From Heteronotia binoei (taxonomy: Eukaryota): 64,000 nt of DNA. Made by a program: the position numbers and the translations under genes. This document shows, in pieces, positions 28,312-45,389 of the stretch (within the stretch, counting starts at the first letter, position 1; each line of letters opens with the position of its first letter). The notes below the pieces were generated by a model. That model had not been told where the DNA came from. It made no database searches and saw only the letters and a list, made by a program, of their open reading frames with translations. The stretch covers positions 123,752,001 through 123,816,000 of the forward strand of contig NC_083223.1 in NCBI RefSeq assembly GCF_032191835.1, written 5' to 3'.

Positions 28312-28422
28312 AATCAACCGCAGAAATCCTCTGTAGACGTTAGAATGCAGTCCTTCTCCGGGGACTCTTTGTCAAGCATGCGGGTTCAATGATGAGTCGG
28401 GTTGGATACAAGACTATGTTTA

Positions 28423-28662
28423 TTTTTTTTAGTTACAAACAATTTTATTAGTAACATATGGTAATACATTTCAATTTCTTACTTCATTAATAATTACTTT
28501 TTAAAAATCTATCCCATCTATTACTTTCTACCCACCCCTCCCCCTGTTACTTAACCTCCGCCAGTGTTATATACTTAAAATTTTAATATTAAAGGTACCC
28601 TTAATTAATAAGAACCAAAATTAATATCCTCTTCCCTCTTATACTTAGTTATTATCAAAAAT
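28423..28662 (-). mobile_element. L1 3' UTR fragment with poly(A), inside Gypsy copy 1
   Basis: Reverse complement matches 62270-62498; T-run at the left end. Confidence 0.85.
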
Positions 28663-28664
28663 GA

Positions 28665-30974
28665 AGTGTGCCTGTTTACGGTCTTCCCTTGCAAGGCTGG
28701 TAGTTCGACTATGAAATCCATTGACACTACAGACCAAGGATGTGTAGCTGTTTCTAGAGGCTTTAATAATCCAGGGGGCTTCCCCCCCTTCTCTTAGCCA
28801 TTAAGCAAATGGGGCAAGAAGCCACGAACTCAGAAACGTCCTTTTTCATAGATGGCCACCAGAACTGCCTGTTAATTAGATGCAGTGTCTTCACATACCC
28901 AAAGTGCCCGGCTAGCTTGTTAGAATGGCAAAATTGCGGGACCTCTAAGCGGCGGTCTTCCCCTTCCTTTTCGGTCTCTGTGGCCAGTCGTTTCCCCCCC
29001 TCCCACTTCTCTGTTTGCAGATTCTGCCTTGCTTTGGACCATGTGGTTACCATGGCCGCTACTTCAGAGGGGGAGATCAAGGAGTCCACTACCTCTTCTT
29101 TTTGGCTATTGTGCTGAGGGAGGTGCGAAAGGGCGTCTGCCAAGAAATTTTTTATCCCTGGGATGTGCTTCAGTATGAAATCAAATTAAGAGAAAAACCC
29201 CGCCCACCTAATTTGCTTTTCAGTGAGTTTGCGACGGCCGGTGAGCGCCTCCAAATTTTTGTGATCGGTCCAAATTTCAAATTGCAGTTTGGCGCCCTCC
29301 AGCCATGACCTCCATGTTTTTAAAGCATAGGTCACAGCAAAAGCTCCTTATCCCACACTGACCAATATCTCTGCTCCTGGGAAAATTTCTTAGAAATATA
29401 GGCACAGGGCTTTAGCCTTCCCTCCTCATCCCTTTGTATGAGGATGGCTCCGACCACGACGTCAGAAGTGTCACATTGCACAATGAAAGGCTTCAATTCA
29501 TTCGAGTGGGTCAAGACCGGCTTGCTTGTGAACAGCCTTTTGAGCTTATTGAACGCTTCCTGACATTTTGGCGTCCAATTTAGCTTCACTCCTGGTTTTT
29601 TGGAGTCTGGACCCTTCTCCTTGGTTTTTAATAACTCAGTGAGGGGCAACATTATCTGGGCGAACCCTGGTATGAAGGTACGGTAAAAAATGGCAAACCT
29701 GAGGAACGATTGGAGCTGTCTACATGTCATCGGGGGAGCCCAATCTAGTACCGCTTGAACCTTACTGGGGTCCATAGCCAACCCCTGCCCGGATACTCTG
29801 AAACCCAAATAGTCGAGTTCGGTCTTGTGGAACTCACATTTTGACAATTTAGCATACAACTTATGCTTCAGCAGTGTACTGAGGACCTCCCTCACTAGTT
29901 TCATATGCGATTGGAGGTCTTGTGAATAGATAATTATGTCATCCAGGTACACCACCACCCCCTTAAACAAATATTCTCTCAGTACTTCATTGATAAAGTT
30001 CATGAACACTCCCGGTGCTCCTTGTAACGCAAATGGCATCACTAAGTACTCAAACTGTCCCATTGGTGTATTGAATGCCGTTTTCCACTCGTCCCCCTCC
30101 TTGATGCGCACCCTAAAGTACGCATCTATCAAGTCCAGCTTAGTAAAGTACTGAGTAAGTCTTTGATGAGGGGTATTGGATAGGCATTAGAAGTGGAAAT
30201 CCCATTAATCCCCCGAAAATCAGTGCAAAGTCTAAGCGAGCCGTTCTTCTTTTTCCTAAAGAGAACGGGGGCTGCATTGGGGGCCGTGGCGGGTCGTATT
30301 AAGGCTCTCCTCAAGTTCTTATCTAGGAACTTCCTCAGTTCTACCTTTTCGGCCCACCCCATTGAGTACAGCTTGGCCTTAGGCAGGGTCTGCCCTGGGA
30401 TCAGTTCAATGGCACAGTCCGTGTTCCTATGGGGCGGGGGTTCATCAGCTCCCTATTCACTGAACACCCCCCTTAAGTCTTGATAAGCCTTAGGGATCAC
30501 CTGGACTTCCTCCATTGCCAAGCAAACCTCCTCATTTCTGGGCGGCAGACTGGGGCCCCACTCTTTATTCCAAAGATGGGCCAGACACCTCGCATCATTG
30601 AACTCTATTATCTGGTCTCCCCATCGAATATCGGGCTTGTGCTTGGCTAGCCATCCTACTCCCAAAACTACATTGTAAGAGGATGAGGGGGCTATCACAA
30701 AAGCCTCCTGGTCCCAGTGGTCTTTAATGCCCACCGGTACTAATTGAGTCTCTAACATGCATGGCTCCCCACTCATCACTGACCCATCCATTTGTTCAAA
30801 CTGGATGGGATGCGGCAAAGCCATTGTGGGAGGCCCCAACGCATCCACCAGCTTAGGGGTGATTATGTCTCTCGTGTACCCTAAGTCAATCAAGGCTTTC
30901 ACTTGCACAAACCTCTTGAATCTGCTGTTTAGCAAAATTACTGGCACAAAATATAGCGACCCCGTTACTCTCAC
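28665..30974 (-). pseudogene. Gypsy copy 1 pol (protease, RT, RNase H, integrase N-terminus), frameshifted
   Basis: ALIDLG protease site, YLDD, QCDTSD RNase H, GHFG...CPIC HHCC zinc finger. Confidence 0.9.
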
Positions 30975-31018
30975 CCTGAGTGGTGCCGGTTTGTTGGCGA
31001 CCTGCTGACTGGCACCGT

Positions 31019-32484
31019 TTAGAGCAGGTTGTCCTCGTTTCCTGCTGGCTCATCCTCCCAGGACATCTCACTCAGCTCATCGATGACAATGGTCTCCCTG
31101 TCAGGCATCGAGCTTGCAGCCGCGCTGCTCTTCACCGCATTCTTAGGGCGGCCGGTTTGCTTCTTTGGAGTCGGAGTGCTTGTCTTGGTGGTGGTGAACG
31201 GTGGCCTAAGGGGGTTCGGGCAGCCACTGGCCAAGTGGTTCGGGTCCCCGCACCAAAAACACTTGCGAGTTGCTGGAGACTTCCTGGCTCCTCTCCCCGC
31301 CTGGCTCTTCTTCGCCTGTTTTGGGTCACGGCCTGACTTGCCGCTCTGTTGCTGGCATTGCATGGCCAGTCTCTTCATGTTGGTCTCCACCTCCCCCACC
31401 AGCTGTATCCACCCCAGCAGGGTGGTTGGCTTCACTTGCTGTAAGGCTCAATCCAGGACACTAGCATTCAGCCCCCGGGTGAAATGCTTGATCTTCATCA
31501 GCTCACTCCACCCCCTCACTTTAGCCGCGTTGGTGCGGAACTCAGCCGCATACTCACGGATTGACTTGGAGCCTTGTTGTATGTCCCTCAGGGCAGCCAG
31601 CACGCGGGTCTCCTGCAGGGGGTCCTCATACTGGGCCAGCAAAGCTTGGAGGAAGGTGGCCACATTGTCCAGTTCCGGGCTCATGGCCTTGTACAGACTC
31701 ACGTACCATCTTTTCGCGGTCCCCTTCAGTTTCGATCCAAGATAGTCCACAAGACTAAACTCATCAGGGAAGGTGTTCCCCCAATAGTGCATGCAGCTAT
31801 TGGCCTGGATCGTGAAGTATTCCACTTCTTCAGGGTCCCCATCGAAGGTGGCATCCAACTCCCTTCCTTGGCCGCCTTCTCAAGGGGCCAGGGGTGCTGC
31901 TGGTTGCGCCCGGGGTGGTATTGTCGATGGTCTAGCCGCAGGCGGTTGCGAGGCTCTTCTTGTTGCGGGCCTCAGAATCCGGTCGACTTGCCTGTTAAAT
32001 TCTCCGGCCATCATGATGGTCATCACTTGCATCTCATCCCGCAACCCCTTGGCGACCTCTTCAACTTCCTTTCTTACCATCGAGCGGAATTCTCGAGCAA
32101 TCTCGTCTTCCTCCTCCCTCGGGACCATTATCTCATGGGTCCCAACCACTTCTACCTCTGCCAGAGGTGGATCGACTTCCACGCTTGTCACTGCTGTGCT
32201 CCCCTCCTCTCCAGGCTCGGCTGCCTCACCCTCTCCATTGGCCATCTTCACCAGCGTATGTGCCTGGTTAGGATGGCATCTCTGTGCGTCGGAGCCTCAT
32301 CCATCATGGTGGTAGAGGTACGCAGTTGCCACTGGTGTGGGATGACCAAGAGTTGTTGAATATGGAGAGGGGAGCCCTTTCCAGTGACTCTCCAGGTGTC
32401 CAGCACGTGCCACGGCGGTGTTGGTGCTCTCACCCCTTCCTCAGGTTCTGGAAGTTCACTGCTCACTGGAATCTTTTCAGCCAT
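31019..32484 (-). pseudogene. Gypsy copy 1 gag (PEG10/LDOC1-like capsid plus CCHC knuckle), frameshifted
   Basis: FDGDPEEVEYF...LKGTAKRWY; CFWCGDPNHLASGC. Confidence 0.88.
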
Positions 32485-33201
32485 TCAGTTACAAAGTTGC
32501 CAAGGCGGTTAAACTTCTTACAAGGATCACTCTCAAAATGTCAATCATGAGGGTTCAATGACGAGTTGGGTTGGATACAAGACTACGTTTATTGATAGAC
32601 CGATACTTTCAGTGTAACAGATTCTTGAGAGTGATGCTACAGATACATTGATACAATACTTTTAAGGCTAACTTCAAAAGGATTCCAAAAGGTGGGGCAA
32701 GGGATGGGCTCTCACACATAAACTATCATAAATGTCTACATTCTCATGGCGTTATCAGGACTTCGTCCTTGCTTTCCCCAGATGTATCGTACTCCCTAAC
32801 AGGAATGTATGGGAAGGTGCTGATTACTTATTCTCAAGTTAGTTTCATTTCTCTCTACTTCTACTTTGCAAGCAAAAAGGAGGAAGGGAAAGAATAACAG
32901 AGTTAACAGACCTTGGTCCTCCATGATATTTCACAGACCAGTTTCATGGAGGACCCTAAAACAATCAATTATCAATGGAATTTTACCATGCTTGACACTC
33001 TTCAAAGCCAAAAAGGAACCCCACTGGAATTCCTCATCAGCCAAAGTAAATCCCCTCAGAATTTCATATGCATGTCTTGGCCTTCTCCTTGCCTGGAAGA
33101 AGTAGGCAGCAGGTGTTAAGATCACCTTCTCTGCCCAGAACAGAGGCTCTGGTCTGCTCCTCGACTGAGAAGCAGTTCAATCTTCCATGACCAAAGCCTG
33201 G

Positions 33202-33630
33202 AAGTCCCTATAAAGAAAGTTTGAAGGAGTTGGGCATGTTTAGCCTGGAGAGGAGGCAGCTGAGAGGTGATATAATCACCATCTTCAAGTACTTGAAGGG
33301 CTGTCATATAGAGGATGGCGTGGAATTGTTTTCTGTAGCTCCAGAAGGTAGGACCAGTACCAATGGGTTGAAATTAAATCAAAAGAGTTTCTGGCTCAAC
33401 ATTAGGAAGAACTTCCTGACAGAGTGGTTCCTCAGTGGAACACGCTTCCTCAGGAGGTGGTGGGCTCTCCTTCTTTGGAGGTTTTTAAACAGAGGCTAGA
33501 TGACCATCTGACAGCAATGAAGATCCTGTGAATTTAGGGGGAGGTATTTGTGAGTTTCCTGCATTTTGCAGGGGGTTGGACTAGATGACCCTGTAGGTCC
33601 CTTCCAACTCTATGATTCTGTGATTCTATG
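33202..33630 (+). mobile_element. CR1 LINE, 3' part (continuation of 22621-23129)
   Basis: KELGMFSLERRQLRGD...; (TTCTATGA)-type tail at 33609-33630. Confidence 0.92.
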
Positions 33631-34510
33631 TACATATGCACTTAATGTGGTGGGGAAAATCTAATTTGTTTTTGCTAGGCTTGCCAGTCCCTAGGTCCCA
33701 GTGGGGATCCCTGGTTTACCAGGCTCCTTCCTGCCACCAGTCAGCTGGCTGGCAGGGGGAAGCAACACTCTCACAGTCACTATGTGCCTTTCCACCTCAG
33801 ACAGCTTAGAAGACTTGGGAAGGGCTTGCTTTTTGAAAGGTGTGTGTGCCTTAAAATCTCCAGAGCTAGGCTGAATTGGGGTCGGGCGAGCCTGCAGAAC
33901 AATGTGGCTGTTGTAAGAAAGGGGAGGGAAGCATCCCAGTCCCTCCATTTGTTTTGCAGCTTCTTTAAAAGTTGTTTGCACAGTAAAATAGAGAGAACCT
34001 TTGGTTTCCCTGTGTTAGTCTGAAGAACTTGGTAGTGTATACAGCATTCAACAACTCCCATGATGAGCAAATTGCCCCAGTGAGACCACAAAGTGTGTGC
34101 TTCCAAACTGTGTTTATTTTTGTCTGCTGTGTGTGTGTGTGTATGAGAGAGAGAGAGAGGAAGTGGAAGTGCAGCCAGCTGCTGGGGGATGAGGGAATGA
34201 AGACTGTATTCAGGGAAACTACACTGCTGTATTTTTATTTATTTATTTTAAGGAATGGGAAAGTCTCCTGGCCCCACCCCCAAAGCACCCAGGTATTTTC
34301 TGAGTTATACTAGGCAACTCTAGTTTCAGTTTGGGAACCCAAGAGGAGTTGAACTAAAATTGATACACATGAGGGTTTTTTTTGTCTTCATCTTCTACTG
34401 TATCTCATCATAATTCATTATACATATTAGAATCCAGATACCAGATTGGCTAGTCCTGTGTATGCTTTGTTGTATACAACTATCATAGACCACAGTCCAA
34501 TTACTACAAA

Positions 34511-34800
34511 TAGGGATGGGCACAAACCTAATTTCATGAAAAAATCATCAGTTTGTGAACCAGATGTTTGTGCCCATCTGGATGACCACAATCCTCTCAT
34601 GACCCTTCATGTGGTTTATTGGGTTCATGCTGGGAAATGAGGGGGGGGGCTTCCAAATATTCTTATTAAATGGCTTTTGCAGGATCTCTCCCCCACCCTT
34701 GGAGAGCCGCTGCCAGCAGAAAGGAGGGAGGGTCAATCTCAGATCTTCCCCCAAACCTCATGAACTGAACCTTCATTTTCTCAGTTCATGCCCATCCCTA
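34511..34800. mobile_element. MITE with TAGGGATGGGCA termini
   Basis: tagggatgggca ... tgcccatcccta. Confidence 0.75.
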
Positions 34801-36099
34801 ACTACAAACTATTCTGCCCTTGGCTTGCAGAAGACATTCTCCTTTTCCCTCTTATACTAATGTGATGCATGGGTGATGGTAGCATGTAAGTGTTCTCATA
34901 ACCTAGAGAGGTGGCAACAATTGACAGCTGTACCTGTAAAACCTGAACAGAGAACGTTTCCCTTGGATTTCTCTTCACACTTTCAATAGATTAATGGAAC
35001 CATTTGGTGTTTACAGGCCTATGTAAGATGAGTAAGGCCACCCTTGAAATACAGACAAGTCTTTTGACTTTAATTTGAGAACTTTATCTCTCTTTAATTG
35101 AAATAAAGTACTGTCTAACAGTAAGTGAGAATGACAAAGATCTTTGAAGGTATGACTGGTTGACTTCAACACAATTTTTTCATGGCCTTAAACATTGCTA
35201 TATCAATTAAACTCCCTTATCTGCAAAATTAATGGAAACATGCCTTGTTTCACAAGTATAATAATTTCACAAGTTTTAGGAACAAAAATTCTGTCTTTGC
35301 ATGTATTACATACAATCCAATGACTGCATCCAGAATTGTAGGCATATACATAGAGGCATACTAATAAACAACTTTGAAAAACTGTTTTTGTGCTGATGTG
35401 GGATGGGATGAAAACTGTTCATGACATTTGACTTATGTTGGTTTTTCTCACATATAAGACATTTTGACATTATTCATGTGATTAACATGAATGTGTGACA
35501 TCAACCTTTGCACAGCTTTGGAGCATGTAAACAGCTTGCAGAGATGCTGTTAAATGCAATTATGAAGTACTTTGTAACTCAGAAAAAATAAATAAAAGGG
35601 CATTTCCTACTGAGTCGGAAAAAGTGCATGTTAAGAAAAAGCAAAGGAACAAGAAGATGCTATTTTTTGCTGCTGAAGTATGCTCAGTGCCTAAGGCAAT
35701 TTGTTCAAGAACATTTCATGCTTACCTCTTGACTGATTGGTCTAGAATGCTGCCAAGGTCAGTGAAACCTTGGGTTATCTGTCAGATGGATGCCAATTTC
35801 ATGAATTACTGACCAAAGCTATATAGTAACTTAACTGAAGAGTAACTTAAATTAAGCATGCAATATATTTTTAAAAAAATGTGTGTCAGGTTCTTATTTT
35901 TCTTGTTTTAGAATTAGGGGAAAGCAAAACATGCCTATCCCAATCTCCAAGCACTTATTAAAACTATAATTTTATATTCCCATATCTGCCTTATAATTCA
36001 GCTTGAACAAAAAACCAGAACCATAATCCAATAAATAAAGCCTTGCTTAAAAAAATTGACCTTACTGTTGAAAAAAGTTCCCTCTCTCTCTTGTCTCTC

Positions 36100-36195
36100 T
36101 CTTGTCTAGAAGACATGAGCAGTGACTCATGAAAGCTTATATCCTGCCACAAATTTTGTTAGTCTTTAAGGTGCTACTAGACTCTTACTCTTTGT
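36100..36195 (+). mobile_element. Penelope-type terminal fragment with degenerate hammerhead core
   Basis: atgag-cagtga-ctcat-gaaagctta...ttgttagtctttaaggtgcta; CTGANGA box broken. Confidence 0.6.
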
Positions 36196-37110
36196 CTAGA
36201 ATAGGCTGTCTGGTCTGAAAAATCAGCAGTTCACAAGGACTCACAAATGGGGAATTGAGGGCCTTAATAAAAGACTGACTCTTTTAAAACAGCTCTTTCA
36301 AGTTAATCAAAGGGCTGCAGCATCAAAATATCCAAGTTTATTTTCAGTCTGCCAGAGTGCCAAGACAGCCCAAGAGTTTCACATTACATTTTCTTTATAC
36401 ACAGTTCTACAGTCACATGGAAAGATATGTATGTTATGTAACATGGGAATAGTTGTGTCCTATTACACATCAAAATGCTGATCAGCCTGATCCGGTTTTA
36501 ATTTATTTATATAATTTCCTTTCTCCCTGACCTTACTGCTTCTTTTTAAAAAATGAAGAATGGCAATTTTAGTACCAGCAACGTCACACAATTCTTTGCC
36601 AATCACCTTACAACAGCTCTAGAAAGCAGACTTTAAAGAATAAACAGGGATTCTAAGCTAAGAATTGATTCTGCGACTATGAAACTCACTGAGAACCCGA
36701 GTCCAGCACTTTCCCACCCAACTCCAACACTGTATTCATTGGACCATAGATATATTACATGATGCTAATTAAATTAACTTTAGCTCCCATGATTAGTTCT
36801 CCCTGTTCCAGGGCCATAGCCAGGATTTCGAAGGTTGGGGGGCCTCTAAATTTTTCAGGGGGCACTCAGTGGCCCCACCCCATAGCCTTCCCTCCCACTC
36901 CCTTCAAATAAAACTGCCCTACATGATTTGGGTGATGGGGAAGGGAGGGCAGCAGCTACTAGAGCACTGACTGAACTTGGCAGGCGCTGCAGAGGGAAAC
37001 TGACAAGTATTTTTCCTTGGCTTTAAAGTTTCCCTCTGCAGCACTGCACCCCTTAAAGCCAAGGAAAAGTGGCAAATCCCCTCTCCTGCACTGGCTGAAC
37101 TCGGCCAGTG

Positions 37111-38439
37111 TGAGAAAAATACCCCTAATTTCAGAACATCGTAGTCACCCGTTTGGTTGCCAGGGTGCCTGGAGACTCAACTCACATACATCCGCCAGGA
37201 GAACTTGGGTTTTGTCTACCAGAATGTAGGGACTTTTGTGAGTACAAACAGCCACAATGTTGCAGCAACATTCCGTGTCTTCGGAGGAGTGCTAACCAGG
37301 AGAACAGATGGGTTTCCAGTCACTCCGTGCAATCACCATCTTGGCCATTGCAGCGGAAGAAGGTGCGCCGCCAGGAACTGTCCAGGCAAGCGGTTTCCAG
37401 CCTTGACCATAGAATCCATATAGGAAGGCTAACATCACCAGCAGCTATCTTCCTGCAGTGCCAGACTCTATTACAGCAAAGTGGGAGGCTCATGTACTCA
37501 ACAGATGTCACCTATGCATAAAGCCATCAAGCTTATCTTAGGCGTAGATCCTGTCAGACTGCCTAAGCCTTTGTCCAACGGAACCCTAGACAAAGGCTGG
37601 TGCCAGTAGAGGAATGAAGAAGAGGAAGAACATCTTCACCAAGAGCCAAGTTTCTTTGTATAGATCGGGTGTTACCTTAGGTAGAAATTTGGCCATCTAT
37701 TGTCACCTTTTTAGATAAGTTTGATAGTCTTAATCACCTCCACCCATTCTTTCCCTTAATGGTCATCCTGGAGCCTCCCACTTTGGCCTATTGTTACCTG
37801 GAAGTCCAATAAGGTAACCAGGGCCAAGTCTGCTCATTGGCCAGGTACAGGCATCCAATCAGGTGCCCCCAATAAACTGGCTATTGGCTACCGCTTAAGT
37901 CCAGCCCTTATGGTCATTGTGAAGCCTCCCCTTTTCCTGAGGTCATGTACCAGCTGACCACCTCTCATCTGCCCCTGCACCTCCCATCCCCTAAGGGCTC
38001 AAGGTAGTCCTTATAACCTGTGACCCAGCTCCCCACAGGTGTTCCTCTAGCAGTACCTCATTCCTGCTGTTTAGATACATCCCCGATTCCTGATCAGTTG
38101 AGAGTCCCTTCCCCCTAGTTCTTGTTTGTCGCCATTGGAGCCTTCCTTGAAGACTATGATTGGAAATTATTACCCTGTTTGTCCATCCTTATGTTACCTC
38201 TATGCATTTTTCTCTATTTTTATTAGGACTGTATGGGTGTTGTATGCATTCATTACCTTGTATGTGTGTTCTATATTTTTCTGCAATAAATTTTAAATTA
38301 TTTTACTTAATTATTAAAATAATTGGCAAATAATTGGCAAATTTAAGCAATAATTTCTGGAAGTGGAATCCTGTATACATAGATTCTAGATCCTTTTTAA
38401 ACCATAGATGCCCACCTGTCAATTCCCCAACCTCTTTTG
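37111..38439 (+). mobile_element. Long (~1.33 kb) solo LTR, copy B
   Basis: Collinear with 14310-15591; AGTG duplicated at both ends within array unit 2. Confidence 0.68.
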
Positions 38440-39064
38440 AGTGCTGCACAGGGAAACTGACAAGTCTTTTTCCTTGGCTTTAAGAAATGGGGGGAGTCCC
38501 CCCCCTTAAAGCCAAGGAAAAAAGGGCGATTCCCTCTCCTGCACTGGCTGAACTCAGCGGGCGCTGCCGAGGGAAACTGACAAGTGTTTTTCCTTGGCTT
38601 TAAGGGGAGGGGGGAACCCCCCCTGTCAGGCGATGGAGACTCAAGGCAGTATTCATTGAGACAATGTAATACTTTATTGGAAACTCATAGCTGGAAAAAA
38701 AAGTTGAGACTAATACCTGGGAATGGGTGTCTCTTAGTCTTATGGAATCTACATCAAAGCGATATCTAAACAAAGACACTATTCTCAAAACAACAGGGAG
38801 TGAAGGTGCAAACTTTCACACAAGAGCTTCTGCTTATCTCTTTGCCTCTGGGAAGATGCTGGCCAGCAGTGGCATCTATTAATGGTCACATTCCTTTGCT
38901 CCCTTTACAACCTAAACAAAGTTAGCACTTCAAACGTCCTCCCTTTGATATGCATGCTAGCTACAATATAACAAAAGGCTGTGGGTTAGTATGGAGAGTC
39001 CATTTGGTTAGTATTCTATAATTTCAGTATGATAGAGTTACAGAGCCTGACATACTGCCCCCCC

Positions 39065-42000
39065 TAAGCTCGTGCTCGGGGTTTGTCTGGGTGCAGTAGG
39101 TAAAATCTTTTTAGAAGAAGAGGTGCCCTTAGATCGGTTGACTTAACCCACTCATCGCACGAGGGGGGAAAATATTTCCATCGGACTAAAAAATGCAATA
39201 TTCCTCACTTGAGCTCAGCATCCAGTATTTCTTGCACTTCATGATGACTCTGACCCCTCACTTGAATAGGGGTGGGCGTCGTAGGGCGTGGATGCCAAGA
39301 CAGCTCCAGGATGGAAAACCGGGTGAATTTTACTAAACATTTTAGGTAGCTCTAATTCAACAGTCACTGCATTTATTATTCTCTTTATTTTGAACGGTCC
39401 CAAATATTTGTATGCTAGCTTTCTGGACGACTGTGGCAAAGGTAGATTCTTAGCTGAGAGGAACACAGTATCCCCCACTCTAAAGTCCCATTTGGGTGAG
39501 TGTTTTTTGTCAAATTGTGCCTTGTAATCCTTTTTGGCTGCTTCCAGGTTTTCTTGAATTATTTCCCACCCTTTGGCTAGCGATTCCCACCATTGTTGAC
39601 ACGATGTGGGGGAACTGGTGGTGTTGGTGACTGGTAAATTGGGGAAGGGTTTCCCTTCATATCCATTCACAATTTGAAAGGGAGTGGTTTTTGTCGAGCT
39701 ATGCAGGCTATTGTTGTAGCCATATTCTGCAAATGGCAATAGCTCCACCCACTTGTCTTGTTGGTAGTTAATAAAGCACCTGAGATATTGCTCGAGAAGA
39801 GAGTTCACACGTTCCGTCTGTCCATCCGTTGGGGGTGGTAGGCGGAACTCAGTCCCTGCTCAATCCCTGTTAATTTACAAAACTACCGCCAGAAGTTGGC
39901 AACGAACTGTGGGCCGCGGTCACTAATGACCTTGTCCGGGAATGAGTGTAGTTTCACTATGTGTTGAAAAAATAGCCGCGCTAGTTTCTTAGCAGTGGGG
40001 AGTTGCTTGCACGGTATGAAGTGGGCTTGTTTTGAGAATGTGTCAACCACCACTAGGATCACTGTCTGTCCCTGTGATATGGGTAGTTCGACTATAAAGT
40101 CCATAGACACCACCAACCACGGTCGTTCTGCTGTGGGAGTGGGACGAAGTAAACCGGGTGTTTTCCCTCCCCTCCTTTTGACCATTATGCAAGCTGGACA
40201 AGACGTCACAAATTCTGAAATATCCCTTTTTCATTTGGGGCCACCAGAACTGTCTGCTCACCAGATGTAGCATTTTTACATAGCCGAAATGCCCGGCTAA
40301 TTTGCTGCTATGGCAGTGCTGCAGTACTTCCTGGCAGAGGCTTTTGGGGACGTACAGTTTCCCTTCCCGATACCAAAATCCTCCTTTATTAGTCCTTCCG
40401 GCCTCTCCTCCCCTTCTTGCTCTGCTTCTGTGATTAGTTTATCCCCCCTCCCCACGGCTCTGGTTTCCCGGTCTTTTTTCCTGACAGAGTGGTCACACCT
40501 CCTGTGACATTGGAAGGCGGGATGAGAGAGTCTATGGTCTCCTCCTGTTGGCTTTCGTGTTGCGGCAACCGAGAGAGGGCGTTGGCTAAAAAGTTTTTCG
40601 AGCCTGGTATGTGTCGTAACGTGAAATCAAATTTGGCGAAAAACCCCGCCCACCTGATTTGTTTGGCGGTTAATTTTCAGCATGCGATAAGTGCCTCTAG
40701 GTTTTTGTGATCTGTCCATATTTCAAATGGTACCCTAGCCCCTTCCAGCCAGGACCGCCAGGTCTTTAGGGCAAATGTTACTGTGAATGCTTCTTTGTCC
40801 CAGACTGACCAATTACATTGTTCATTGGAAAATTTCTTGGATATATAGGTGCAGGGTTTTAATCTGCCTTCAGGGTCCTTTTGCATCAGTATTGCTCCAA
40901 CGGCTACATCGGAGGCATCACATTGCACCACGAAGGGTTTCAGTTCATTGGGGTGCGCTAAGATTGGCTCACTGGTAAACAGTTGTTTTAATTTTTCAAA
41001 CGCTTTCTGACATTAGGGGGACCATGCTAGTTTTGAACTTGTTTTTTTCGCCTCGAGTCCCCGCTCCTTAGTCTTTAACAAGTCTGTTAGCGGTAACATC
41101 ACTTTAGCAAACCCTTCTATGAACCCACGGTAAAAATTTGCAAATCCGATGAAAGATTGGAGCTATCTACGTGTTCTCGGGGTTCCCAGTCCAATACTGC
41201 TTGGATTTTTACTGTGTCCATGGCTAAGCCTTTTCCTGACACCCTGAAACCCAAGTAGTCTAGTTCCTTCTGGTGAAATTCACATTTTGATAACTTAGCA
41301 TAGAGTTTGTGCTCTAGTAGGGTGTTGAGTACTTTCCTCACCAACTTTATGTGGGAAGGGAAGATCCCTCGAATAGATAATGATGTCATCCAGGTACACC
41401 ACCACCCCTTTGTACAGGTACTCTCTTAGTACGTTAATGAAATTCATAAACACTCCCGGGGCCCCTTGTAGCCCAAACGGCATCACTAAGTACTCGAATT
41501 GTCCCAAGGGGGTGTTGAACACTGTTTTCCATTCGTCTTCTTCCTTAATTTTGATGCGGAAGTAAGCGTCCCTCAGATCTAGTTTCGTAAAGATGCACCC
41601 CTCTGATACTGTGCTTAACAAGTCTTTGATCAAGGGGATGGGGTAGGCGTTTGACATGGATATGGAATTTATCCCGCGAAAATCTGTGTAAAGTCTAAGC
41701 CCCCAATCCTTCTTCTTTCTGAATAGTACTGGGGCCGCGTGCGGTGCCGTGGTTGGCCGGATGAACCCCCCGGTTTAAGTTTTTGTCCAAGAATTTCCTC
41801 AGTTCAGCTTTCTCTGCCCATCCCATTGAATACAGTTTCGCTTTGGGTAACTCTTGCCCCGGGATGAGCTCCATGGCACAGTCTGTGCTTCTGTGTGGGG
41901 GAAGTTCGTCCGCCTCCTTTTCGCTAAACACTTTACGTAAGTCTCGGTACTCTTGTGGGATGGACCGTACTTCTTCTATGGTTAAGCACAGTCTCTCATT

Positions 42001-42429
42001 CTGAGGGGGAGGTGAGGGGCCCCATTTTACTGACCAGTGGTGGTGGGTGCATTTTTTGCTGTCAAAGTCTGTCATGGTTTGTTAGGCCCACTGATGCCTC
42101 GCCAGCCACCCTACCCCCACTACTATGTCGAAGGATGAGGAGAGGGCAATTACAAACACTTCCATGTCCCAGTGCTCTTTAATCCCTACTGGGAAGAATT
42201 GGGTTTCTTCTACGCACGGTTCCCCCCTCATTACTGTCCCATCCATCTGCTTGAATTGTAGCGGGTGGGGTAGGGGCGTCCTGGCTAACCCTAGTGCTTC
42301 GACTAACCTCGGGGTGATGATCTCTCTAGTACACCCGGAGTCGATTAGCGCCCGGGTGTGCATAAAACGCTTGGAATTGGGATTTAATAAAGTCCAAGGG
42401 ACTAAAAATAGTTCTCCGGATACTCTCAC
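39065..42429 (-). pseudogene. Gypsy copy 2 pol (PR-RT-RH-IN-chromodomain), frameshifted
   Basis: LIDSG, YLDD, CDASD, SMDFI...SDRG integrase core, GPF motif; terminal EVQEILDA...FLVRWK...DEWV...HPDKP chromodomain with an internal TGA. Confidence 0.92.
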
Positions 42430-42473
42430 CCGCAGTGGTGCCGGTGTGGCATCGACCTGCCTTTCGGCACCGC

Positions 42474-43928
42474 TTAGGGCAGGTCGTGCTCGTTTCCCGA
42501 CGGCTCTGTCTCATCTCCTGACTCGTTCTCCCTGGTAAAATCCTCGTCAAGCACCGGCAACAGTGCGGTGTTGCCCCGACTGGGCTCCTTTGGTCTCCTC
42601 AGTGTCTTCTTCGCCTTGGGACCCACTGCCTTCGGTGCAGAGTGGGGGGGGGGGCTCGAGGTTTCTCGGGACATTCCTCGACTAGGTGCCTCGGGTCGCC
42701 ACATCGATAGCATCTGCGAGTGGTGGATCACTTTGCGGAGCTGCTCGGGGGGGGGGGTAGGTTTTTTGGACTCAGTCTTTGCCCCTGACTGAGCCTCACG
42801 TCCCCCTCTGCTCCCCTCTCGCTGTCACTGCAAGGCCACCCGATCCATGTTGGTTTCCACTTCTCCCGCTAGTTGCACCCAACCCACCAGCGTGTTTGGC
42901 CGTGCCTGGTGGAGGGCCTGATCCAGGAGGGCGGATTTGAGGCCACTCTGGTAGGCTTCAATCTTCATCACTTCATTCCATCCTCTCACCTAGGCACAGT
43001 GGGTCTGGAATTCCGCAGTGTACTCTCTCACCGAGTGGGTTCCTTGCTTCAGGTCTTTCAGCGCGTTGAGGGCCTGAGCCTCTCGGAGGGGATCCTCGTA
43101 TTGGCGCAGCATGGCTTGCAAGAAGGCATGCACACTCCCCAGTTCCGGGCCTCTCAATTTGTATAAACTCACGTACCATCTCCGGGCCGCTCCCGTGAGT
43201 TTCGATCCTAGATAATCCACCCGGCTTGGTTCATCTGGGAAGGAGTTCCCCCAGTAGTGCATACAGCTGGTTGCCTGGATGGTGGAATATTCTACTTCTT
43301 CTGGGTCCTTCTCGAATTTGAGATTGAGTTCAGTTCACGAGGTTTTCCTGTTTCTCGAGGTGCTGTACCTCCCAGAGGTGGTACGGGTGGTGTCGGGGCT
43401 CCTCTACTGCCACCTCCGCTTGGATTCGGCAGTGGTGGTGGTGCAGGCGGCCCCGATCCCCGAGGTTGCCGGCGTTCCTTCTCCCATAGGGACTGCATGC
43501 GGTCGATCTGCTTCCCTACTTCCCGGGCGATTGCCTGGGTGTTGCTGTGGATCTCGCTTTGGAGGTCCCTCACCAGCCCCTTCATCTGGGTCTTCACTTT
43601 CCCCAAGATTTTTTCTTCCAAGCGGGTGGCTTCATCTTCTTTCCCCGGCCCCGTCGTCCTCCGAGTCGAGCAGGCTCATGCGGGACGTGTCGATTTCTTC
43701 TCCTGGTTCTCCCGTCGTGGGCCATGTGAGGAGGGTCTCGTGTCGGGCTGGGGCTGCATCCATCAGTGCAGTGGAGGCCCTCGGCTTCCACTGCTGCGGG
43801 CTGATGAATAGGGTTTGGATGTAGGATGGGGATTCGATTTCCGCGGCACGCCTATGTCCAAGGACGTGCCAGGGGGGAGTTTTCGGTTCCCCTGGAGGTT
43901 CTCCGTTATCCGGAACTTTTTCAGCCAT
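42474..43928 (-). pseudogene. Gypsy copy 2 gag, frameshifted
   Basis: YWGNSFPDEPSRVDYLGSKLTGAARRWY; CYRCGDPRHLVEEC knuckle. Confidence 0.88.
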
Positions 43929-45389
43929 TCGACTTCAACGTGGCTGGTTCAGATAAATCTCTTTTTAAAGATTAGTCTCAAAATGTCAGGCGATGGAGAC
44001 TGAAGGCAGTATTCATTGAGACAATGTAATACTTCATTGGAAACTCATAGCTGGAAACAAAAGTTGAGACTAATACCTAGTAATGGGTGTTACAGAGCCT
44101 GACACCCCCCTTAAAGCCAAGGAAAAACGGTGATTCCCCTCTCCTGCACTGGCTGAACTTGGCCAGTGCTGCACAGGGAAACTGACAAGTGTTTTTCCTT
44201 GGCTTTAAGCGGTAGGAGGAGCCCCCACCCCTTAAAGCCAAAGAAAACCAGCAATTACCCTCTCCTGCACTGGTTGAACTCAGCAGTGCTGCAGAGGGAA
44301 ACTGACAAGTGTTTTTCCTTGGCCTTAAGGGGTGGGGGGAGTCCCCCCCACCCTTTAAAGCCAAGGAAAAATGGTGATTCCTCTTTCTAGCGCTGGTGGT
44401 AGAACCTGCTTTTTGCATTTCTGCCTGAATACTACAGTGCTAGACCAGAAATATTGAAACTCATAGCTTCATGTTCAATAGACTCTATTTAATTAAAAAA
44501 GAAAACTGTGGATTGACCAGCTGGTTCTATCCTTGATATGACTATGAAAGTGTCAAAAAGGTTAGGGAGGCTTCAAAGGAATTAGGATAAATGGTCAGCC
44601 TTGACAACATCAAATTCCAAAATGCAGTTAGTTCCAAACTGATCAGGTACAGAAATTTAAAAATCTGCTAACTGCAGTAATTTGGGAATACTTGCTTTCA
44701 GCAACAAGGACCATGTAGTAAGTACAATTCCTATACAAGGTACACAAACCACATAGGCTAATCTGTTATCAGAAGGCTGGGATCTGGGTACAGGCAGGAA
44801 GAAGAATAAGGAGATGGTAAGGCAAACCACCCCGTAAAAGGTCAGCTGTGAAAATGTCATGATGCGATGTCACCCCAGAGTTGGAAATGACTGGTGCTTG
44901 TACAGGGGACTATCTTTACCTTTTTAAGTTCAGAGAGAGACATATGTAAGGGGAGAGGAGAAAGAACTTTGGGGCCACTCAACTGTCACTGTTGTCCTAC
45001 ATTCCCAAGTACAGTAGTACTCAAAGTTCCATTTTAATGGTGCTCTTTCCTTTACCCCACCCCAAACTTTTTGTACCTTTCCTCTCTCCTGCTATCCAAA
45101 TTCCTGCCTGTAACTTTCTGATTTTAGCAGAAATTGAGGGAAAGTGAATTGTTCAAGGTCTGAAGGCATGTTTGACAGAAAATTCAACACAAACATTTTA
45201 GTTGTTAATTTTCTTAATAAAATTGGGAACCACAGTTGTAAGACCAATAAGCCTCTAGGTTGTCCAGTAAAAAACAAAAGGGATCTTTTGCCATAAACAG
45301 TGTTGGAAGAGAATGGTTTGGCAAAAGTTTTGCTAATTATATTATTCTGGAACTCTGTTCTGGAATTCAGAATATAGCAAATGGTATAT

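Follow-up and report, generated by a model that had tools for sequence, protein, structure and literature searches.

The window analysed here, a stretch of 64,000 nucleotides (nt) of the genome of the gecko Heteronotia binoei (contig NC_083223.1, positions 123,752,001 to 123,816,000 of the forward strand), contains two degraded Ty3/Gypsy retrotransposons with long terminal repeats (LTRs), which we call copy 1 and copy 2. We conclude, with a probability of about 0.85, that they represent two old, inactivated families of the Tf1/sushi type whose own RNA, and not a host transfer RNA (tRNA), primed minus-strand DNA when the elements were active. Such tRNA-independent self-priming had been proposed in an earlier note on this DNA. 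The 11-base pair (bp) complementarity between the LTR and the DNA that follows it, the position of this complementarity, the changes mirrored in its two arms, the anatomy of the elements and the layout seen in their relatives are observed directly; the start site, the cleavage and the priming are inferred.

Both elements are encoded on the minus strand; the motifs quoted in the earlier note and here are minus-strand readings of plus-strand coordinates. The 5′ LTR of copy 1 ends in ...TGACA at 32539 and is followed by the spacer TT (32538-32537); that of copy 2 ends in ...TGACA at 43984 and is likewise followed by TT. Immediately after this spacer, each element carries a putative primer-binding site with an exact complement inside the LTR:

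32526-32536, minus strand: putative primer-binding site of copy 1, TTGAGAGTGAT, 2 nt (TT) after the LTR.
32625-32635, minus strand: putative self-primer of copy 1, ATCACTCTCAA, proposed to form the initial 11 nt of the RNA, exact complement of 32526-32536.
43971-43981, minus strand: putative primer-binding site of copy 2, TTGAGACTAAT, 2 nt (TT) after the LTR.
44064-44074, minus strand: putative self-primer of copy 2, ATTAGTCTCAA, in the 5′ LTR, exact complement of 43971-43981.
38704-38714, minus strand: ATTAGTCTCAA again, in the 3′ LTR of copy 2.

All of these coordinates had been given in the earlier note, and both direct reading and a script returned the same 11-mer sites and the same exact complements. 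The script also reproduced the reported distances from the first base of the partner to the end of the LTR, 97 nt in copy 1 and 91 nt in copy 2. For every LTR, the longest complement found between the LTR and the following 59 nt is 11 nt long and begins at the third base after the LTR. Both duplexes are exactly 11 bp long and are ended by a mismatch at the 5′ side of the partner (C × C and U × C). Furthermore, reading of the sequence after both 5′ LTRs agrees with the claim that neither element has a TGG-type tRNA site, and the 41-42 nt that precede gag contain no alternative primer site. The probability that an LTR of 430-460 nt contains an exact 11-mer complement by chance is about 1e-4 (0.00015 and 0.00025, from 20,000 shuffles); the two hits are not independent, because copy 1 and copy 2 are homologous.

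The comparison of the two copies bears on the pairing itself. Identity between them is 9/11 in the 11-mer, 11/13 in the spacer plus site, and 39/87 (45%) in the part of R-U5 that lies between the two arms, which thus stand out as islands of conservation. Both inter-copy differences in the 11-mer, at its positions 3 and 5, are exactly mirrored in the site, so the alignment of copy 1 with copy 2 bears out the mirrored changes that the earlier note had described. As a rough illustration, if the partner were unconstrained and diverged like the background, it would retain nine bases and acquire the two matching changes in about 2-3 cases per 100,000.

The same arrangement was looked for in 80 metagenome contigs encoding relatives of the reverse transcriptase (RT) at 41-49% identity, 61 of which were usable. 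In the regions upstream of RT we collected all maximal inverted pairs of 10-14 nt whose arms are 30-500 nt apart, and then located the nearest preceding CA. Across the 61 relatives, the downstream arm stands exactly 2 nt after CA in 19 of 94 pairs on the sense strand compared to 3 of 94 on the opposite strand, and no spacing other than 2 nt after CA stands out. Among these 19 pairs, 12 distinct site sequences occur, each with its own matching partner and mostly in an ...ACA GT context. Alignment revealed a repeat pair in three of these loci; in L020 and L080 it ends at the CA that directly precedes the site, in L054 elsewhere. In 7 of the 12 loci examined, a TATA motif is found 31-37 nt before the first base of the partner. 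Judged from these sequences, the layout of the gecko elements, in which an LTR ending in ...CA is followed by 2 nt and a site of 10-12 nt, with the partner about 30 nt after a TATA motif, recurs across the wider group with co-varying sequences. The occurrence of the same layout in the relatives supports both the mechanism and the geometry of the start site, by comparison only.

Seven of the metagenome loci (L020, L022, L028, L034, L054, L061 and L080) share ...TTGACA GT ATTTCAGACT, with the complement 213-248 nt upstream, and form one family, which is probably fungal. The motif GTATAAG is found 33 nt before the complement of ATTTCAGACT in both loci checked, L020 and L054. Variant sites with matching partners are present in L027, L051 and L038. 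The L028 locus also carries, upstream of RT, a near-perfect inverted repeat of several hundred nt that is unrelated to the priming site.

The protein-coding remains identify the kind of element involved. Pfam matches to the ordered pieces of both copies comprise Retrotrans_gag, Ty3_capsid, DUF4939, an aspartyl protease, RVT_1, RT_RNaseH, Integrase_H2C2 and SH3_Tf2-1, in the order typical of Ty3/Gypsy elements; gag, protease, RT, RNase H and the H2C2 part of integrase are represented in copy 1, and protease, RT and SH3_Tf2-1 in copy 2. In addition, a 46-amino acid piece of copy 2, preceded by SH3_Tf2-1, matches Chromo PF00385 with E = 2.2e-4 and a score of 21.5 bits, which is below the Pfam cut-off of 25.1. 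An in-frame stop lies just upstream of this chromodomain remnant, and the chromodomain region of copy 1 is deleted. The best relative of known structure is the RT of Ty3 (E = 4e-40), and comparison of a gag piece with solved structures gave no match, nor did a word search with the first 98 gag residues of copy 2. Many stops and frame breaks interrupt both copies, which are dead, so that only the fossil of a mechanism is visible.

The two copies are 63-64% identical to each other in RT and gag and about 70% identical in DNA, which places them in two families that are related. Among database proteins, those closest to the RT piece are from Gekko japonicus (74%) and Anolis carolinensis (63%), followed by proteins of frogs, fish and fungi at 45-51%; one of the latter is named Tf2-like at its source. 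A mixture of fungi and vertebrates characterises the Tf1/sushi or “Fungi/Vertebrates” cluster (bioRxiv 10.1101/2022.12.06.519325), and squamates are known to carry chromoviruses (PMC3670739). The model of Sushi LTRs has the termini TGTYANR/CNTNACA and AATAAA near the LTR 3′ end (PMC3601003, with the termini in its Table 3). The LTR of copy 2, TGTCAGG...CCTGACA, fits these termini, and that of copy 1, TGTCAAG...ATTGACA, deviates from them by one mismatch. By these sequence features, both copies are probably members of the Tf1/sushi group of chromoviruses.

The primer of Tf1 is 11 nt long, a length equal to that of the gecko sites, and, according to the Tf1 model, is later copied, which rebuilds the site. 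By analogy with Tf1, transcription of the gecko elements would have begun, as the earlier note had predicted, with the initial base of the 11-mer (ATCAC.../ATTAG...) in the 5′ LTR, a TATA-like motif being located about 30 nt before it. The first 11 nt of the RNA would then fold back across an R-U5 loop of 91-97 nt and pair with the site located 2 nt after the LTR. The RNase H of the element would cut after nucleotide 11, and the freed 3′ OH would prime reverse transcription. A change in one arm would be either carried to the other arm or selected against, which is our proposed explanation of the mirrored differences between the two families. In Tf1 itself, a site downstream of the 5′ LTR is the pairing partner of the RNA 5′ end, within a “pretzel” of three duplexes, and the cleaved 5′ piece acts as the primer; in the Tf1/sushi group, self-priming is a common trait that extends from fungi to the vertebrates (PMC4600332; PMC6317226; bioRxiv 10.1101/2022.12.06.519325). 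The tRNA-free reading is supported by (i) this layout known from the literature, (ii) the identity of the copies as chromodomain Ty3/Gypsy elements and (iii) the co-varying relatives.

The signals around the putative start site are the following:

32660-32665, minus strand: TATA-like motif TTAAAA of copy 1, −30 to −25 from the 11-mer, inside the LTR.
38738-38743, minus strand: TATA-like motif ATAAGA of copy 2, −29 to −24, in the 3′ LTR only, aligning with TTAAAAG of copy 1.
32588-32593, minus strand: AATAAA of copy 1, 43 nt into the proposed R.
38673-38678, minus strand: AATAAA of copy 2, 37 nt into the proposed R, reading AATGAA in the 5′ LTR.

The first of these is the TTAAAA that had been noted about 25-30 nt upstream in copy 1, and its position on the minus strand, 32665-32660, agrees with that description. 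The step from −1 to +1 is from a pyrimidine to A in both copies (C to A and T to A), the same 5′ base marks the limit of the complementarity in the two families, and AATAAA is found about 50 nt before the end of the LTR, in agreement with the Sushi LTR model (PMC3601003). These features lend indirect support to the predicted start site. Contigs assembled from two metatranscriptomic runs, 85-99% alike, cover all of copy 2, with 37 and 28 contigs at an identity of at least 99%. Because the contigs of two RNA runs match the whole element, relatives of copy 2 are present in RNA libraries.

In calculated folds, the minimum-energy structures of both RNAs include the 11-bp duplex, with pair probabilities that are mostly 0.86-1.0 and fall to 0.22-0.63 for the terminal pairs; the pairing probability of the copy 1 self-primer ATCACTCTCAA in the minimum-energy fold is 0.63-1.0. 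The z scores of the segment reaching from the 11-mer to the primer-binding site are −2.3 for copy 1 and −4.3 for copy 2. Just inside the duplex of both copies, UGUU(A) can pair with the LTR-terminal (U)GACA, an interaction that resembles one of the accessory duplexes of the pretzel. As this pairing is invariant between the copies, it does not constitute evidence.

Several points weigh against self-priming from the RNA 5′ end or against parts of the argument for it. The folding check suggested in the earlier note was successful insofar as the duplex appears in the minimum-energy fold of both copies, but not for copy 1 taken with its flanks, the fold of which is no better than those of shuffled sequences (z only −0.8 to −1.0). 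A duplex search of both copies yielded no convincing third pretzel duplex, the candidates being located at different positions in the two copies; the folding tool predicts no pseudoknots. The TATA-like motif of copy 2, ATAAGA, is a poor one. The contigs of the RNA runs carry neither molecule ends nor strand, and with DNA carry-over being possible they do not prove transcription. The comparison of families covers two members only, the assignment to the group was made from domains, LTR termini and nearest relatives, and the tRNA search covered the region only.

These points leave some room for other explanations. Foldback priming could have operated with the 11-mer internal to the RNA, if transcription started upstream of it or outside the element and a longer 5′ fragment served as the primer; the start-site prediction would then be wrong even though self-priming holds. 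The RNA contigs, which show no starts, and the weak TATA-like motif of copy 2 would both allow this, and LTR forms exist that have only 30-73 nt before the 11-mer (the 5′ LTR of copy 2, and an RNA contig that joins 38730 to 39000). We nevertheless consider it unlikely, as the complementarity ends at an identical base in both families, the TATA box of the relatives is 31-37 nt before the partner, and the self-primer is placed at the RNA 5′ end in the literature (bioRxiv 10.1101/2022.12.06.519325). The 11-bp duplex could also be a structural stem of the 5′ leader, with a role in packaging, dimerisation or translation control, in an element that used another primer. A long-range stem closing R-U5 would be kept by compensatory change just as a primer would be, but the downstream arm lies exactly at the usual position of a primer-binding site (CA plus 2 nt), this placement recurs in the relatives, and the 41-42 nt before gag contain no alternative site, which together make a purely structural role very improbable.

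Priming by a host tRNA or tRNA half at the same site, with a coincidental match in the LTR, has a parallel in the half-tRNA priming known in some Ty1/copia lineages (PMC6317226). The site, however, does not begin with TGG, no tRNA genes (ARAGORN) and no Rfam matches were found over the region, and an exact 11-mer with a chance of about 1e-4 is present in the LTR and changes together with the site between families. We thus give a tRNA primer hardly any credence. As for a complementarity that arose by chance and has no function, only the short length of the match speaks for it. Against it stand the probability of about 1e-4 per copy, the fixed position, the occurrence in two copies, the mirrored differences and the conserved islands, and we regard its likelihood as close to nil.

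The closest parallel to self-priming in the gecko elements is provided by Tf1/Tf2 of Schizosaccharomyces pombe, together with Tj1, Tosmo1-3 and Tcry1. These elements likewise lack a tRNA site, carry, just downstream of a 5′ LTR ending in CA, a site that complements the start of R, and are chromodomain-bearing Ty3/Gypsy elements (PMC4600332; bioRxiv 10.1101/2022.12.06.519325). Unlike Tf1/Tf2, the gecko copies have a vertebrate host and a DUF4939/PEG10-like gag, both are dead, they are known here from sequence, and of the three pretzel duplexes the central one is predicted in them. Vertebrate Tf1/sushi elements were reportedly predicted to self-prime by Butler et al. in 2001. In later work that cites this study, sushi-ichi and other vertebrate Tf1/sushi elements are described as chromoviruses for which self-priming is predicted (PMC4600332; PMC6317226). 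The gecko copies share with the sushi-ichi group the motifs of the Sushi LTR termini and an AATAAA close to the LTR 3′ end (PMC3601003), but their RT is only about 45-50% identical to that of fish relatives. For the plant Tcn1 chromoviruses and for TAR elements of the Ty1/copia type, a primer site that is complementary to the LTR has likewise led to a prediction of self-priming (PMC6317226); these differ from the gecko elements in their hosts and, in the case of TAR, in belonging to another superfamily.

Self-priming is the expected behaviour of the Tf1/sushi group and is already known, vertebrates included; knowledge of the mechanism itself is unchanged. The present analysis adds two reptile families to the tRNA-independent LTR retrotransposons and describes a primer and a site that change together between families with 63% identity in RT. 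It is useful for the annotation of lizard Gypsy elements, because primer-binding site finders that rely on tRNA sequences would miss elements of this kind, and it helps to predict the start sites of such elements. Furthermore, sushi-type elements are the source of the mammalian genes PEG10 and RTL1 (PMC3670739), which makes the reptile copies the nearest living model of the ancestors of these genes.

The boundaries of copy 1 are as follows:

28370-32997, minus strand: copy 1, a degraded chromovirus-type Ty3/Gypsy element, identified by target duplication, terminal inverted repeat and Pfam matches.
32539-32997, minus strand: 5′ LTR of copy 1, 459 nt, delimited by target duplication and inverted repeat and by its match to the 3′ LTR remnant.
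28370-28424, minus strand: 3′ LTR remnant of copy 1, consisting of the final 55 nt of U5, with 91% identity to the 5′ LTR.

The target duplication that flanks copy 1 is 5 bp long and perfect, CTCTT (28365-28369 and 32998-33002), and the ends of the element form an 8-nt terminal inverted repeat, TGTCAAGC...GCTTGACA. Because the duplication and the inverted repeat bound the outer end of the LTR at 32997, the LTR is 459 nt long, and with the LTR now correctly bounded the TTAAAA of the earlier note falls inside it. An alternative in which the LTRs are about 120 nt long, with a U3 of 20-30 nt, was dropped, as the same two features set the LTR end of copy 1 at 32997. The 11-mer begins at position 363 of the 5′ LTR, which would divide it into a U3 of 362 nt and an R plus U5 of 97 nt. 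The C-terminus of integrase and the remaining part of the 3′ LTR are gone from copy 1. An AT-rich segment of 243 nt (28425-28667) replaces this C-terminus and most of the 3′ LTR.

Copy 2 has retained both LTRs, in two different lengths:

38624-44104, minus strand: copy 2, a degraded chromovirus-type Ty3/Gypsy element, identified by its LTR pair and Pfam matches.
38624-39052, minus strand: 3′ LTR of copy 2, 429 nt, the full form TGTCAGG...CCTGACA, identified by the LTR pair.
43984-44104, minus strand: 5′ LTR of copy 2, 121 nt, without 308 nt of U3 found in the 3′ LTR.
39053-39067, minus strand: polypurine-like tract TTAGGGGGGGCAGTA adjoining the 3′ LTR of copy 2.
39067-39204, minus strand: chromodomain remnant of copy 2 at the C-terminus of integrase, matching Pfam Chromo PF00385.

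The 308-nt segment of U3, located at 38731-39038 in the 3′ LTR, is absent from the 5′ LTR, and its junctions have only GT in common. Since the LTR of the sister family is 459 nt long and the TATA-like motif falls in the missing part, the 5′ LTR of copy 2 would have undergone a deletion, and the difference in length would not stem from an insertion. Compared with the U3 of copy 1, this segment shows no significant homology, as 62 of 300 shuffles reached an equal or higher score. Two short-U3 forms of the LTR keep R-U5 and the site intact: the 5′ LTR of copy 2, with 121 nt, and a form of 164 nt that comes from an RNA-library contig and has the same breakpoint. We think it quite improbable that such forms are a propagating variant that relies on outside promoters and in which an internal 11-mer still self-primes, uncoupled from the start site.

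In the RNA-library contig in question, 38730 is connected to 39000 through 4 different letters, so that its left breakpoint, 16 nt ahead of the 11-mer, is the same as in copy 2. In the copy 2 family, U3 may vary as a module.

The sole gap within the 64-kb window is a run of 129 N at 1176-1304. Copy 2 sits within a 120-nt tandem repeat that continues past both of its ends, and a target duplication of about 5 bp would fit the C-runs at the two junctions. This repeat is found at 38440-38623, 44105-44412 and 36923-37110; its core, CCTTGGCTTTAAG ... CTTAAAGCCAAGG on either side of a G-run/C-run, is palindromic, and the point at which copy 2 inserted into it is a C-run.

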